From the sequence record MT995927.1: a stretch of 64,000 nt of DNA; one strand, written 5' to 3'. Shown here piece after piece: positions 53,951-62,776 of the stretch. The position numbers and the translations under genes are program-made. The notes under the pieces are model-generated. The model did no database searches and was not told where the DNA came from. It saw nothing but the letters and a program-made list of their open reading frames with translations. Positions within the stretch are counted from its first letter, which is position 1. Every line of letters begins with the position of its first letter.

Positions 53951-54823
53951 ATGGCACGTCGTTCTAATAAAATTCGTATTGGTTTTAACGTATCGCTTAA
54001 AGCGCTTGAACGAAATGGATCTGATGTAATTAAACTACATGATGACATCATATCTTGTTTTAGTGAACTATATCAAAATTACGTAAAAATTGATACAACT
54101 ACTGACAAAGATGACAAATCACTAAAACAAGGCATTATTGATGTCGTGGTGTATGTCGATCTAAATACAGCGAACCAAGCCATTCGTTTTAAAGGTATTA
54201 GTGATCTGGTAAACCATCTACAGTTTAATGTAATGGCGAATGATGTTATCGTCGATACAAGTGAATATATTCAGCCTAGCCATATGTCATATATCGAAGA
54301 TGGTCACCTGAATATGTTAGTGCGTCGAGAAGGTAAAGAGGTTATCAAAACCATTTTCACTGATGAATATGGTGTTGATCCACTAGTTAATAATGGATCA
54401 ATAGGAGATGGATGTAGTGTTTCCGGGATCTATCTAATCGGTGAAGAAAATCGGGTTAATAAACTGGCACGTATTGTTTCTAACAACATTCGCAACGGAG
54501 AGTTTAATTTCAAGACCGAAATAGGTATCCGTAAATTCTATTGGAGTGTACTCGGAAAACCAAGTGCGCAATTTAAGTATATCCACAGTGTGGTATTTAA
54601 GTACATCCACAATGAAATATGGAACCGTAATAGTTTCTATGTGGATACACTGATTAAGCTAACCAATGGCAAAGTTTATAGCTATGCTAAGAATGGTTTT
54701 GTTGGTGGACCTACTGAACTAGAATTCCATTATTATGGTGTAACTGATCGAGAAAATTGGGATAATGCGTCAGACAATTTCCTATATCAGGAATTCGAGC
54801 AAAGTTGGTCTGTAAAAATCTAA
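53951..54823 (+). CDS. hypothetical protein, probable paralogue of 54880
   Basis: 290 aa; CSV.GIYLIGEENRVN and KNGF. Confidence 0.8.
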   Translation: MARRSNKIRIGFNVSLKALERNGSDVIKLHDDIISCFSELYQNYVKIDTTTDKDDKSLKQGIIDVVVYVDLNTANQAIRFKGISDLVNHLQFNVMANDVIVDTSEYIQPSHMSYIEDGHLNMLVRREGKEVIKTIFTDEYGVDPLVNNGSIGDGCSVSGIYLIGEENRVNKLARIVSNNIRNGEFNFKTEIGIRKFYWSVLGKPSAQFKYIHSVVFKYIHNEIWNRNSFYVDTLIKLTNGKVYSYAKNGFVGGPTELEFHYYGVTDRENWDNASDNFLYQEFEQSWSVKI

Positions 54824-54828
54824 TACAT

Positions 54829-54857
54829 AAAGGGCTCTTCGGAGCCCTTTATTTTTT
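54829..54857 (+). terminator. intrinsic terminator
   Basis: AAAGGGCTC-TTCG-GAGCCCTTT then a T-run. Confidence 0.8.
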
Positions 54858-54879
54858 CTTTATTTGGCAGGAATATAAA

Positions 54880-55665
54880 ATGCATCGTCGAACTATGTAC
54901 AGATTTAGCTTATCATATTCCAATAAACTTATTAATAATAACCCACTTGGTTTTACAGTCGAGAGTTATCTTGAAAGCTGGTTTGACAAACTCAAGTGTC
55001 GATTAACTAAAGGTTATACCAAAAGCCATGCTATTCATTTTCGTGGAAGTTGGAAATACTTTGAATTAGATCAATATAAGAACAATGCTTTCTTCAATCA
55101 ATATCACATGGTGATGCAGTCACTAGAAGATCTAGAAAGAAAGATTAGTGGAGTGATTGGGTTAAGTATCAAAATCACTAAACCAGAACGACATTTATTT
55201 CATGTTCTATTTAACCATGAAAAGATTATTCTATCCCCTAATGGCATTATCTTTGATGTACGTGTTCCAAAACACACCGTGATAGCTAATCCTGATGTTA
55301 TGGGATATCGTAATTGCAATGTAGATAAACTGACGGTATTTGGCGAGCGCTCTAAAGTTAACTATGTGGTTAAACAAGTACGTTATGCCTTAAAGCAGAA
55401 AGGGGTGACAACTGTTGCCAATAGTTCAATGACTCGTTTTTTATATGACCTATTTCATCCAAAATACAGAGACAATCAAATTTATAACTACGGCATGACT
55501 ATGTCTGATGTTTATGTAATGGCCGTATTCAAAAATGGGTATACGGAAATCTATGGTAAAGATGTAGGTGAAATATTTGAAAGTCATACTCTAGATTTTC
55601 TAGAACGTGAATACATGATCTGTGGACAATATTTTCCTAAGCTATCCAGAGGGATGCTAGTATGA
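54880..55665 (+). CDS. hypothetical protein, probable paralogue of 53951
   Basis: CNVDKLTVFGERSKVN and KNGY; start moved to ATG 54880; ATGA overlap with the Bcs1-like gene. Confidence 0.75.
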   Translation: MHRRTMYRFSLSYSNKLINNNPLGFTVESYLESWFDKLKCRLTKGYTKSHAIHFRGSWKYFELDQYKNNAFFNQYHMVMQSLEDLERKISGVIGLSIKITKPERHLFHVLFNHEKIILSPNGIIFDVRVPKHTVIANPDVMGYRNCNVDKLTVFGERSKVNYVVKQVRYALKQKGVTTVANSSMTRFLYDLFHPKYRDNQIYNYGMTMSDVYVMAVFKNGYTEIYGKDVGEIFESHTLDFLEREYMICGQYFPKLSRGMLV

Positions 55666-57188
55666 TTATAGAAACCTTATTGCAATATTACGCCATGTTC
55701 ATCGATATCTCTCAGAAGAATATGGTTATGGGTGGAGCTATCGGAATGGCAATTGGTGGTTTATTCTGGACCACTCTAAGAGGCTTACCAAGTAAACTAG
55801 CTAGGTTCGCATTAAATCAGTTTACAGTTAGTCTACATATTACCAACATGGGTAATGGGCTGAACGAGAAGAACTTTGATTGTTTCATGGAATGGTATAT
55901 TAAGCAGCCATTAGCTGGATTTAATCGACGTTTTTCAACTAATGTTGATGAGCAAAGTTATAGTGCAACTAAACAGAAAATTGGTGTTGGTTTTGGCTTA
56001 CATTTCTTTCTGTTTAAAGGTAGGTTATTCTGGTTTGTAAAAGCACGCCGGGATAGTCAAAATGCCAGTCGAGATCAAATGGATATTACTATCCGTGGAT
56101 TATCTAGGAGTAGTAAACTAATTATTGATTTAGTAGATGCTTACCATTGGCGCCCAAATGAAAGGGGTCTGACTATTTCACATTGGGATGGTAACCGTTG
56201 GGGCAATGAGATTGAAGTTACTAAACGCGATATCAACACGGTGATTTTGCGTAAAGAGATCAAAGAAGAATTCCTTAATAAGATTGAAGAATTCTATTCT
56301 GATCGGAAATGGTACGATGATCGTGGACTACCCTATAAATTCACTTGTGTTCTAACAGGTCCTCCTGGTACTGGTAAAACCTCAATCAGTAAAGCGATTG
56401 CCTCACATTTTAATAAAAATGTTAGTGCACTGTCATTAGCCTCTATGACCAATGATAGTCTTAGGCGGGCATTTACTACACTACCTAAAGGTAATATTCT
56501 TCTAATTGAAGATTTCGATGATACCCCGGCAGTTAAAGATCGTGTTTTAAATGATCCTGTAAAACTAGATAAAGAGATAAAGGAATTAGAGAGGAAATAT
56601 TCTTTTATTGATTTAATTGAAAAATATCCGTCTGCATGGGTTGATCTTAAAGATGACTATGAAGGATACTCTGTAGTTGGGTTTAATGACACCATCTATA
56701 TCTTTGATGAAAATAGCGATGATCAAGGTTTTGGGATAAGTGCTTATGCTATGGCTGAACTGGGTGTTTCAAAATGGGCCGATGAAAAAGATCCATTATT
56801 TACCACAATTCGCCGATGGTGGAAATTAAAGAAGTGCATGAAGAATGGAATCACGTATGAACAACCAGCTAGCGGATTAACTTTGTCAGCTCTATTAAAT
56901 GGGCTAGATGGCATTGTTCCACTAGATGAGACTATGACCATTCTAACTACAAACCATCCTGAGAATATTGATAAAGCACTTCTAAGGAAAGGTCGCGTTG
57001 ATTACATGGTGGAGATTCCATATCTACGAGATCAAGAAGTTAGGGAGTATATTAAACTAATGTTCCCTGACTTCGATATTCCTGAAGATATCAGATTTAA
57101 AGATCAGCCAGGGTGTGATGTAATGGCGGCTTTTTCAAATAACCGTTATGACCCTAATGCTTTTATCAATAGTCTATTGAAATATTAA
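55662..57188 (+). CDS. Bcs1-like membrane-anchored AAA+ ATPase
   Basis: N-terminal TM (MGGAIGMAIGGLFW), BCS1_N-like FTVSLHIT..FMEW..GFGLHFFLFKG, KWYDDRGLPYK, GPPGTGKT, LLIEDFD, TLSALLNGLDG, TTNHPENIDKALLRKGRVD. Confidence 0.85.
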   Translation: MIIETLLQYYAMFIDISQKNMVMGGAIGMAIGGLFWTTLRGLPSKLARFALNQFTVSLHITNMGNGLNEKNFDCFMEWYIKQPLAGFNRRFSTNVDEQSYSATKQKIGVGFGLHFFLFKGRLFWFVKARRDSQNASRDQMDITIRGLSRSSKLIIDLVDAYHWRPNERGLTISHWDGNRWGNEIEVTKRDINTVILRKEIKEEFLNKIEEFYSDRKWYDDRGLPYKFTCVLTGPPGTGKTSISKAIASHFNKNVSALSLASMTNDSLRRAFTTLPKGNILLIEDFDDTPAVKDRVLNDPVKLDKEIKELERKYSFIDLIEKYPSAWVDLKDDYEGYSVVGFNDTIYIFDENSDDQGFGISAYAMAELGVSKWADEKDPLFTTIRRWWKLKKCMKNGITYEQPASGLTLSALLNGLDGIVPLDETMTILTTNHPENIDKALLRKGRVDYMVEIPYLRDQEVREYIKLMFPDFDIPEDIRFKDQPGCDVMAAFSNNRYDPNAFINSLLKY

Positions 57189-57211
57189 TATACTAAAAAG
57201 GAATCTGTAAA

Positions 57212-57400
57212 ATGAGTCTACTCAACATTCTAAATACCGTTGCGGCTGCTAATGGTAGGGAAGTAGATGATTTTAATATCACCTATTTAAACGATACGGA
57301 TGTGTCATCTAGTTATACCTCATTTCGATATCGGTATGTTGATGAGGATCGTATTGCACATATTTTCATTGTTTCTGAAAAAATCGAACAGGTTCGCTAA
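57212..57400 (+). CDS. small hypothetical protein
   Basis: 62 aa, AAGGA SD. Confidence 0.7.
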   Translation: MSLLNILNTVAAANGREVDDFNITYLNDTDVSSSYTSFRYRYVDEDRIAHIFIVSEKIEQVR

Positions 57401-57548
57401 TTTGTATTGTTGGCAAAACTAACTGGTTACAATGTAACTGTAAATACATGTATTTAATTTTGAAAACATACTGGAGTTATTGATGTATTGAGTTGAAACT
57501 CAATAATAACTCCTACTTTAATTTAAAAAATACAAAAGGAATATTTCC

Positions 57549-58202
57549 ATGGCGTCAATCATTAGTCTACCTTTTATCAAACTAGTAATCAGCCGTAATA
57601 ATAATTACACTGTTAACCATCAGTCAGGTGCTGATAATGTACCTCATCTATGTGTTAAAGTAAAACATTCTAACGGTTATGCCTGGTTCGGTATTATCAT
57701 TGTTGATTATGAAAAACGTACCAGTGGTTGGACTGAAGAAGAATTCAATGCAGTTGTAACTCGTTTCCATGAAGCAATGAATTCTCAATGTGATATCCAA
57801 CGATTAGAAACAGACATTAACCGACTAATGGATTCCATCCAAGATGTTGTTACTGGTCGGAAACGACCAACCCTATTCGGCGGTGATAGTAATGACTTCA
57901 TTCAAATGCATCTTCAAAATAATATCCAACTTGATATTTATCGGAATGAAATTAACGAAGATACTCTAACCTATGGTGGGTATCGTGGTAAAGTAAGTCT
58001 TCGCCATGGTTATGAAGAATATAACTTCTTCCTGTACCATCGTGGTATTATTTTAAATCATTACATCGATGCAGAAATCGCTAAAGAGCTAATTGAAGAC
58101 GCTCTTAATAGAACCTTCCCTGAGATCACTTATCTGCCACAAGCTATTGTTGAAACTACGGCAGTTGAGCGTACTCGCAATAGGCATACGGATAGAAACT
58201 GA
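57549..58202 (+). CDS. hypothetical protein
   Basis: 217 aa, AAGGA SD. Confidence 0.8.
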   Translation: MASIISLPFIKLVISRNNNYTVNHQSGADNVPHLCVKVKHSNGYAWFGIIIVDYEKRTSGWTEEEFNAVVTRFHEAMNSQCDIQRLETDINRLMDSIQDVVTGRKRPTLFGGDSNDFIQMHLQNNIQLDIYRNEINEDTLTYGGYRGKVSLRHGYEEYNFFLYHRGIILNHYIDAEIAKELIEDALNRTFPEITYLPQAIVETTAVERTRNRHTDRN

Positions 58203-58204
58203 AA

Positions 58205-58618
58205 ATGTCAAGTCAGCTTATTGTAGTTGATTTACAAAATCCTAGAAATAAACATATATACAGTGAATTAACTCATGAACATCCTAGAACAATAACATCG
58301 CATCTAGTTGAAGAATTAGATGATTTTGATGTTCATCAATATTCATACCAAGCGGAGTATAAATCTGGGATTGATCTTAGATTAATATTCTTTTGGGATG
58401 GACCATACACTGAACCAAGAGAAGAAGGTTACGAACCAACTGATCTAGAGAAAAGGTGTGTGAAGTTGTGTAAGCAATATGAGGCTGCGATTAACGGGCA
58501 ATTATCTGTAGTTGATCACTCTCGGTTCCGGACGGTGTGTACCTTCAGGTCAGATAATAGTTTACCAACAGCTTTAGATTGGATTCATAAAGAACCCCCA
58601 TCTAAAGAGGTTGTGTAA
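58205..58618 (+). CDS. hypothetical protein
   Basis: 137 aa. Confidence 0.75.
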   Translation: MSSQLIVVDLQNPRNKHIYSELTHEHPRTITSHLVEELDDFDVHQYSYQAEYKSGIDLRLIFFWDGPYTEPREEGYEPTDLEKRCVKLCKQYEAAINGQLSVVDHSRFRTVCTFRSDNSLPTALDWIHKEPPSKEVV

Positions 58619-58645
58619 AAAATAGTAAAAGAAATACACTATTCT

Positions 58646-58738
58646 ATGTAGTTCCTTTACGATTGCTCTTTTATCTTAGTTTCAGTTTTGCTGAAGAAGT
58701 ACCAATGAGATACCCTCCCCTGATCGGGGAGGGTTTTT
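58646..58738 (+). ncRNA. candidate small RNA (~90 nt)
   Basis: TATGTAG start (ATG immediately followed by TAG), TTCAG/CTGAA hairpin, closed by terminator 58712..58738. Confidence 0.35.
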
Positions 58739-58759
58739 GACATCTAAGAGGAAAATATA

Positions 58760-59146
58760 ATGTGCAAACAACACCGCGTCGTATCTATGAAAGTTACATG
58801 CACGCAAGCTCGTTATCCGATCGGTCTACGCGATCTCGGATTTGATAATGCTGCTGAAGCTCGGCAATATCTAATGGATGTCGTCGAATACAATATGGAT
58901 CGTCTCCACCCACAGGATGCTGATACATACCAGTTCCAGCTACAGGATCTGCATGATGGTTTTGTAGTTTCTTACGATATCGAACAAAATGGAAGTATTT
59001 GTTTACGATTAACACTAGCTGCTGTGGCATACCTAACAATCGAACTTGATTTGGGTGTTACTAACAAAGAATCTAAATATATTCCTGTTATAATCAAAAA
59101 GTGGATCAATGGTGATTATACTGAAGGAAATAAATACTTACAGTAA
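58760..59146 (+). CDS. hypothetical protein
   Basis: 128 aa, GAGGA SD. Confidence 0.8.
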   Translation: MCKQHRVVSMKVTCTQARYPIGLRDLGFDNAAEARQYLMDVVEYNMDRLHPQDADTYQFQLQDLHDGFVVSYDIEQNGSICLRLTLAAVAYLTIELDLGVTNKESKYIPVIIKKWINGDYTEGNKYLQ

Positions 59147-62699: not shown

Positions 62700-62776
62700 T
62701 GGTGCCGCCACTCCGAATCGAACGGAGGACCTACGCATTACAAGTGCGTTGCTCTACCTAGCTGAGCTATAGCGGC
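62700..62776 (-). tRNA. trnT: tRNA-Thr(UGU) with encoded CCA
   Basis: Acceptor GCCGCUA/UGGCGGC-A-CCA, D-arm AGCUCAGCUAGGUAGAGC, anticodon loop CUUGUAA, T-loop GUUCGAUUC. Confidence 0.97.

Follow-up and report, generated by a model that had tools for sequence, protein, structure and literature searches.

We analyzed a stretch of 64,000 nucleotides from sequence record MT995927.1 (hereafter, the window), which carries at positions 55662-57188 a gene for a Bcs1-like AAA ATPase. The membership of this protein in the Bcs1 family is secure; its mechanism, the translocation of folded protein, would follow by analogy with Bcs1. The explanation that we favor, with moderate confidence, is an early-expressed, accessory ring of the Bcs1 type, situated in the host inner membrane, whose folded client would not be the Rieske protein. 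The window comes from a phiKZ-like Pseudomonas aeruginosa jumbo phage, and by protein identity (98.2%) the gene is the ortholog of phiKZ gp286 (PHIKZ286, NP_803852.1; NC_004629, 259685-261211). Phages T2P, PA7 and others encode a Bcs1-like protein 100% identical to that of the window. BCS1 orthologs have been described for all three jumbo-phage groups by Iyer et al. (2021), who proposed that the phage proteins bind and translocate folded proteins in membrane-proximal assembly; both the homology and the translocase hypothesis have therefore been in print since 2021. What the present analysis adds is that the Rieske-contact motifs are not kept, that an insert and a gp285-like upstream gene mark one clade, that the gene, according to public data brought together here, is early and dispensable, that bacteria contain closer homologs of mitochondrial Bcs1, that the catalytic and arginine-finger residues are invariant, and that the family carries a signal for an N-out/C-in topology. 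These additions sharpen the hypotheses about the protein and do not establish its function.

Domain architecture, fold and predicted topology

Pfam searches, phmmer searches and the comparison of an AlphaFold2 model with known structures by Foldseek all agree on a transmembrane helix, a BCS1_N domain and an AAA domain in the order found in mitochondrial Bcs1, which is the order that an initial annotation, made from the letters alone, had proposed. That annotation had named a BCS1_N profile search as a check on its proposal. The profile matches with 44.1 bits, above its gathering score of 28.1 (E 3e-11), and is covered from position 2 to position 182 of its 182 positions, while the AAA domain matches Pfam in two stretches (E 1.5e-16). 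Only generic AAA matches were obtained from the NCBIfam library. Among the proteins of the PDB, yeast Bcs1 was the top phmmer match (6sh3, E 4e-38), with mouse Bcs1 next; residues 27-287 and 403-469 of the window protein align to the yeast protein. Two pairs of motifs that the initial annotation had given as close matches to yeast Bcs1, KWYDDRGLPYK against KWYSDRGIPYR and TTNHPENIDKAL against TTNHPEKLDAAI, are correct in this alignment.

The AlphaFold2 monomer model, computed with 103 homologs, has a predicted local distance difference test score (pLDDT) of 88.8 and a predicted template-modeling score of 0.77; its BCS1_N region adopts a beta-rich fold with pLDDT above 90. The top 17 Foldseek matches in the PDB are all Bcs1 chains, with E values down to 2.4e-26 and template-modeling scores of 0.66-0.71 over the full length and 0.80 for the AAA domain. 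They are followed by Bacillus subtilis YjoB (E 2e-14) and then by generic AAA unfoldases. Sequence and fold together rule out a chance match to Bcs1. The solved Bcs1/BCS1L proteins (yeast 6sh3 and 9gs2, mouse 6uko and 8tp1) have, like the window protein, a single N-terminal transmembrane segment followed by BCS1_N and then by one AAA cassette, as well as an ED-type Walker B motif, sensor-1 and both arginine fingers.

Residues 21-39 form the most hydrophobic 19-residue window of the protein (mean Kyte-Doolittle value 1.51) and align with the transmembrane region of yeast Bcs1. A hydrophobic N-terminal helix is kept across the 103 family members, with a median maximum of 1.61 and a start near residue 19. 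The mean net charge of these sequences is -0.04 before the helix and +2.17 in the 15 residues after it, and 90 of the 103 carry more positive charge after the helix than before. This positive-inside signal predicts an N-out, C-in orientation, in which the short N-terminus would face outward and the ATPase would lie on the cytoplasmic side; such an orientation would be equivalent to that of Bcs1, where the ATPase lies on the matrix side. The Walker A lysine (K239), the sensor-1 asparagine (N431) and the arginine fingers R442 and R445 are invariant (103/103), and in Walker B E283 is kept in 102 and D284 in 98 of the sequences. These sites fit an active ATPase completed by the neighboring subunit, that is, an oligomeric ring. 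Since the invariant arginine fingers act in trans they imply an oligomer; they do not fix its stoichiometry.

The client of such a ring appears to differ from that of the mitochondrial protein. A 2025 structure of yeast Bcs1 with its Rieske client Rip1 defined the contact motifs EWR (212-214) and DDR (300-302) (PMC12219900). Aligned by phmmer, they fall on R179-W180-G181 and N264-D265-S266 of the window protein. The tryptophan is the only Rieske-contact residue that is kept family-wide (100/103), and the six commonest residues at each of the two positions aligned with a Rip1-contacting arginine do not include arginine. Because the contact residues are not kept, a Rieske client is unlikely. The Rieske protein of the phage host itself uses twin-arginine translocation (Tat).

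Relatives of gp286, the insert and the upstream gene

The window protein is a member of PHROG 7485 (E 8.2e-182; residues 3-507 align with positions 2-414 of the 430-position profile), a family without an assigned function label that corresponds to the jumbo-phage BCS1 orthologs of Iyer et al. (2021). Homologs are present in 156 phage records, and 782 clusters were found at E <= 1e-30 in a representative library of 1.84 billion proteins. BCS1_N and AAA occur in nearly all of these homologs, many of which lie on contigs of 200-360 kb. Besides phiKZ-like phages, the carriers include Pectobacterium phage phiTE (142 kb, Vequintavirinae), Caulobacter siphoviruses of the Colossus type, a 104-kb Citromicrobium phage and 350-kb Klebsiella and Salmonella phages. 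The family extends beyond nucleus-forming phages, its divergent members in large phages number in the hundreds, and its presence across phage lineages is patchy. The initial annotation had considered the vesicle of early infection as a possible site of action. A role at the early vesicle or the phage nucleus does not hold as a general function of the family, since many of the phages that carry it are unlike phiKZ; a function specific to either structure would be conceivable only within the insert-bearing clade described below.

Bcs1-like proteins are also encoded by bacterial chromosomes. About a dozen near-full-length homologs, from Acidobacteriota, Betaproteobacteria and Rhodobacterales, were found with a 14-sequence alignment among 185,579 species genomes, a lower bound since the scan was pattern-limited. 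Eight bacterial homologs searched against Pfam all matched BCS1_N and AAA, and five of the eight also matched AAA_lid_BCS1. The protein of Paracoccus methylarcula (L101:5692-6927) has many relatives with 50-65% identity on megabase contigs of Rhodobacterales. Its score against yeast Bcs1 is 207 bits over the full length, compared with 145 for an insert-free phage homolog and 135 for the window protein, where the bit score obtained with the solved Bcs1 chains of yeast and mouse serves as a proxy for closeness to eukaryotic Bcs1. We also computed a tree of phage and bacterial sequences, with the insert columns removed, in which one branch parts the phage sequences from all bacterial ones (Shimodaira-Hasegawa-like approximate likelihood ratio test, SH-aLRT, 82). 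Taken together, the bit scores and the tree argue that the phage branch is a divergent offshoot and not the closest prokaryotic relative of mitochondrial Bcs1. The phylogeny suggested in the initial annotation was thus obtained for phages and bacteria, with the phages standing apart, and was replaced by the score proxy for the eukaryotic proteins. Like the window protein, the bacterial proteins combine a transmembrane segment with BCS1_N and AAA, and they are encoded by stand-alone genes; unlike it, they have a contiguous AAA domain.

Two further observations concern the spread of the fold. The bacterial Bcs1-like entries (L091-L104 and P0243-P0362) are stand-alone chromosomal genes for proteins with a transmembrane segment, BCS1_N and AAA; they are common in Rhodobacterales and occur in some Acidobacteriota and Betaproteobacteria as well. 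Among BFVD matches to the AlphaFold2 model, numerous giant viruses infecting eukaryotes (Klosneuvirinae, mimiviruses, marseilleviruses, pandoraviruses and medusavirus) have several Bcs1-fold proteins each, some of them named mitochondrial chaperone BCS1.

Between Walker B and helix alpha3 the AAA domain of the window protein is interrupted by a lineage-specific insert. The initial annotation had noticed it and put it at about 100 amino acids; its length is about 115. The insert is modeled as a small alpha/beta unit of helix and hairpin (pLDDT 56-84) and has no match in Pfam or PHROG. Across the 103 family members the linker between Walker B and alpha3 measures 14-119 amino acids; in most it is 14-70 amino acids long and often rich in proline and alanine, and in yeast Bcs1 it has about 14. 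The five longest linkers (114-119 amino acids) all belong to phiKZ-type sequences: the window protein, a relative 98% identical to it, gp347 of PhiPA3, and the metagenomic relatives P0004 and P0005. Six insert-bearing sequences, including P0124 and that of PS119XW, form one clade in the tree (SH-aLRT 90). In classical AAA proteins this position is that of pore loop 2, so that in a ring like that of Bcs1 seven copies of the insert would surround the cytoplasmic mouth. An intein was considered as the origin of the insert and rejected, as intein termini are missing from the phiKZ insert. One intein was found in the family, at a different site: in P0027, a protein of 807 amino acids from a metagenomic phage contig of 116,892 nucleotides, Walker A is split behind GPPGTGK; the intervening element, of about 340 amino acids, contains a LAGLIDADG_3 domain, ends in HN before TS, and looks like an intein.

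In five of the six insert-bearing lineages a gp285-like gene coding for 250-275 amino acids lies directly upstream of the Bcs1-like gene (window 54880-55665 on the + strand, L002:3219-4004, L171:3236-3988, L172:1416-2186 and L003:3072-3899). The stop codon of the gp285-like gene and the start codon of the Bcs1-like gene often overlap. In the sixth lineage, P0124, this position is taken by a gene of similar size that is unrelated. The gp285 protein of the window is 59% identical to its upstream homolog in PhiPA3 and 26% identical to that in L171, and for the PS119XW and L172 pair of upstream proteins the profile-profile comparison by hhalign gave a probability of 94.5% (E 7.8e-8). A hidden Markov model of the gp285-like family had no other match among 6273 open reading frames from 175 sources, and in a collection of 5.8 billion proteins PhiPA3 provided the only relatives, with none outside the phages of the insert clade. 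The family is fast-evolving, has no known domain, and is confined to the long-insert clade among the loci scanned. A model of gp285 was obtained from a four-sequence alignment (pLDDT 60.6); with this poor model Foldseek found nothing below E 0.02, and only generic ferredoxin-like or cyclase-like folds. Most members of PHROG 7485, in contrast to the window protein, lack such a neighbor as well as the long structured insert. The association of the two suggests, at most, a partnership between gp285 and the Bcs1-like protein.

Expression, dispensability and candidate roles

The RNA of gp286 has the profile of an early gene, with its peak at 5-10 min. In the data of Gerovac et al. (2025) it amounts to 3541, 4784, 1564, 955 and 1011 normalized reads at 5, 10, 15, 20 and 30 min, respectively; it stays high when chmA is silenced, and gp285 has the same profile. 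The same study lists gp286 as non-core and uncharacterized. The initial annotation had looked to a knock-down phenotype as a check on function. In the published experiment, knock-down of gp286 with antisense oligomers had no effect on PFU/CFU and clearly reduced ChmA (Gerovac et al. 2025). In a 2025 transposon sequencing preprint, PHIKZ286 received 55 insertions (26387 reads) and PHIKZ285 received 32 (26130 reads), compared with about 10-15 reads for essential genes (13 for chmA). These high counts show that gp285 and gp286 are dispensable in PAO1, and insertion mutants have been recovered in a published phiKZ transposon library. Thus gp286 is among the few early, non-core genes of phiKZ that have both a confident fold and a measurable knock-down effect, the lower level of ChmA, which makes it a realistic target for functional study.

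The timing and dispensability of the gene fit poorly with a role in late assembly. Under that proposal, made by Iyer et al. (2021), the protein would be a membrane-proximal factor that translocates folded proteins for packaging into the head. In line with this, ENKO_448 (L085:4908-6143), the homolog in Klebsiella phage fENko-Kae01, was found by liquid chromatography-tandem mass spectrometry in a concentrated phage preparation. That sample, however, was a 300-kDa ultrafiltrate of lysate that included many non-structural proteins; the detection of ENKO_448 is what a large complex or fragments of membrane would give, and is no proof of a virion component. The gp286 transcript peaks and drops before the late genes, with the major head protein rising at 20-30 min in the same data set, and neither insertions nor knock-down impair plaque formation. 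Moreover, phiKZ capsids mature at the phage nucleus, not at the membrane. We regard an assembly role as very unlikely.

Bcs1 is the sole AAA ATPase known to carry a fully folded protein across a membrane. The phage makes gp286 in the first minutes of infection. If the solved Bcs1 structures are a guide, its protomers would form a ring, seven-membered in Bcs1, that sits in the inner membrane of the host and has its ATPases on the cytoplasmic side. A folded client would enter the cytoplasmic vestibule; ATP binding would then contract the vestibule and open the seal of the middle domain, so that the client would be pushed into or across the membrane. Within the phiKZ/PhiPA3/PS119XW clade, the insert at the mouth of the ring and the gp285-like protein would probably provide client recognition or regulation. 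The role would be an accessory one, for example in host take-over, envelope remodeling or counter-defence, and would lie outside core replication and assembly. The suggestion of the initial annotation that the protein moves folded proteins across a membrane, or extracts them from it, is reasonable in view of the homology, the topology signal and the invariant ATPase residues, but is narrowed by three results: the Rieske contacts are not kept, the family extends beyond phiKZ-like phages, and in phiKZ the gene is expressed early and can be dispensed with in PAO1. A more specific form of it would have the insert, the gp285-like protein and the ring of this clade act as a dedicated early-infection device that moves a folded phage protein out of the cytoplasm across a host-derived membrane. 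The target membrane would be either the inner membrane or that of the lipid vesicle around the injected genome, the inside of which corresponds topologically to the periplasm. Such a device would be a bacterial export route for folded proteins that is driven by ATP and independent of Tat, and the drop in ChmA after knock-down would reflect a less efficient progression through the early stage. We consider such a dedicated device distinctly unlikely.

A different picture emerges from the size-exclusion chromatography-mass spectrometry (SEC-MS) and cross-linking mass spectrometry data of Fossati et al. (2023). There, PHIKZ285 and PHIKZ286 were predicted by deep learning on SEC-MS profiles to co-elute with the assembled 70S ribosome, and cross-links were found between PHIKZ286 and rplL, rplK and rplJ and between PHIKZ285 and rpmC. 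On this basis gp286, with gp285, might bind the host 70S ribosome, or it might be a client-specific chaperone of the cytoplasm with no translocase activity at a membrane. The second possibility has a precedent in YjoB (7w42), described as a soluble, substrate-specific chaperone (PMC9565160), which has an AAA core and a related N-terminal fold and is the next structural neighbor after Bcs1. The Bcs1 matches, however, exceed those to YjoB by more than ten orders of magnitude (E 2e-26 versus 2e-14), and the phage family, unlike the soluble YjoB, has a conserved membrane anchor, with both the hydrophobic helix and the positive-inside signal kept family-wide. As to the ribosome, the same SEC preparation kept membrane complexes such as FtsH-HflKC in its high-molecular-weight fractions; because such complexes also run at high mass, the SEC-MS and cross-linking data are weak evidence for a true ribosome partner, and co-elution may be due to size or to fragments of membrane. 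Nascent chains or co-translational membrane insertion would also be expected to give cross-links to L29 at the exit tunnel and the mobile L7/L12 stalk. A ribosome-bound or soluble chaperone thus appears unlikely.

The ring might instead remove or remodel a protein of the host inner membrane, such as a defence effector, a receptor or a transporter, with no export of phage protein. Several features are consistent with this possibility: the gene is early and accessory, it sits among small early genes in a region that varies, its presence across phage lineages is patchy, and SEC-MS data show envelope complexes to be remodeled by jumbo-phage infection. On the other hand, Bcs1 lacks the substrate-threading pore loop of extractases (Bcs1 literature). 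Defence-system models of PADLOC gave no defence-related family match beyond generic AAA similarity, the only matches being short ones to the P-loop region of IetA and TRIP13 (at most 40.6 bits), and a host-range phenotype is absent from the record. We therefore judge extraction of a host protein to be improbable.

Our preferred explanation, an inner-membrane ring acting on a folded client, is itself opposed by a number of observations. The predicted transmembrane helix is moderately hydrophobic, its mean value falling just below the classical 1.6. AAA_lid_BCS1 (PF25426) is absent among the 25 families listed of 26 that matched in Pfam at E <= 1, and the phmmer alignment leaves the seal loop 5 residues short of its yeast counterpart; the mechanics may therefore differ from those of Bcs1. 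Helices at the C-terminus do occupy the position of the lid in the AlphaFold2 model. The recovery of gp286 in the SEC preparation, cross-linked to proteins of the ribosomal stalk, also counts here. As all lineages with the insert and gp285 form one clade, their association amounts to a single evolutionary event and not to a replicated correlation. Finally, no neighboring gene is conserved across 25 diverse phage loci, nor across 13 bacterial loci, so that for the wider family gene context suggests no client. If a phage Bcs1 works in the bacterial inner membrane, it would constitute a second route for folded proteins in bacteria beside Tat, and would offer a tractable model for the Bcs1 mechanism.

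Coordinates, gene setting and annotation of related records

The coordinates of the gene, of its parts and of the adjoining gene are collected in Table 1. The predicted product has a mass of about 58.5 kDa. The start codon of the Bcs1-like gene shares bases with the TGA that ends the gene upstream (ATGA). Over the 5 kb around the gene the sequence is 100% identical in T2P, U1B, U5 and phi9_PA9, and 98-99% identical in many other relatives of phiKZ.

Table 1. Features of the Bcs1-like gene and its upstream neighbor in the window
Feature	Position	Strand	Details	Basis
gp285 ortholog	54880..55665	+	261 amino acids; translationally coupled; candidate partner	adjoins Bcs1-like gene upstream
Ribosome-binding site GAGGGA	55649..55654	+		read from sequence
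Coding sequence, Bcs1-like AAA ATPase	55662..57188	+	508 amino acids; ATG at 55662 to stop at 57188	open reading frame list
Predicted N-terminal transmembrane helix	55722..55778	+	residues 21-39; N-out/C-in	Kyte-Doolittle, alignment, charge
BCS1_N (Bcs1-specific middle) domain	55758..56243	+	residues 33-194	Pfam PF08740
AAA core, first half	56349..56525	+	Walker A and Walker B	Pfam, phmmer
Walker A GPPGTGKT	56358-56381	+	residues 233-240	within AAA core, first half
Walker B ILLIEDFD	56496-56519	+	residues 279-286	within AAA core, first half
Lineage-specific insert	56523..56867	+	about 115 amino acids; residues ~288-402	gap between two Bcs1-aligned stretches
AAA core, second half	56868..57071	+	sensor-1 N431; arginine fingers R442 and R445	phmmer alignment
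RKGRVD	56985-57002	+	R442 and R445	within AAA core, second half

Some GenBank records label the Bcs1-like protein as FtsH. FtsH resembles it in being a membrane-anchored AAA protein, and differs in its C-terminal M41 zinc peptidase; no M41 peptidase domain is among the Pfam families listed for the window protein, and the NCBIfam FtsH model TIGR01241 scores 44.8 against a cut-off of 600. We therefore reject this label as a mis-annotation. More generally, the automatic annotations of MT995928.1 (U5) and PQ093904.1 (phi9_PA9) look wrong in the region matching window positions 54000-59000. One of the two records lists a capsid maturation protease, a capsid decoration protein, an endolysin and a u-spanin, and the other names the Bcs1-like gene an FtsH zinc metalloprotease.

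Further upstream, the ortholog of gp284 (53951-54823, + strand) showed a match to the SidC N-terminal domain that is below threshold (Pfam E 0.0013; 18.2 bits, cut-off 25) and probably not meaningful. Few early transcripts in a public time course are as abundant as that of phiKZ gp284. A gene for tRNA-Thr (anticodon TGT) lies at 62700-62776 on the - strand, near the window's end and at a switch in both GC skew and gene orientation; it matches the tRNA-Thr annotated in phiKZ.

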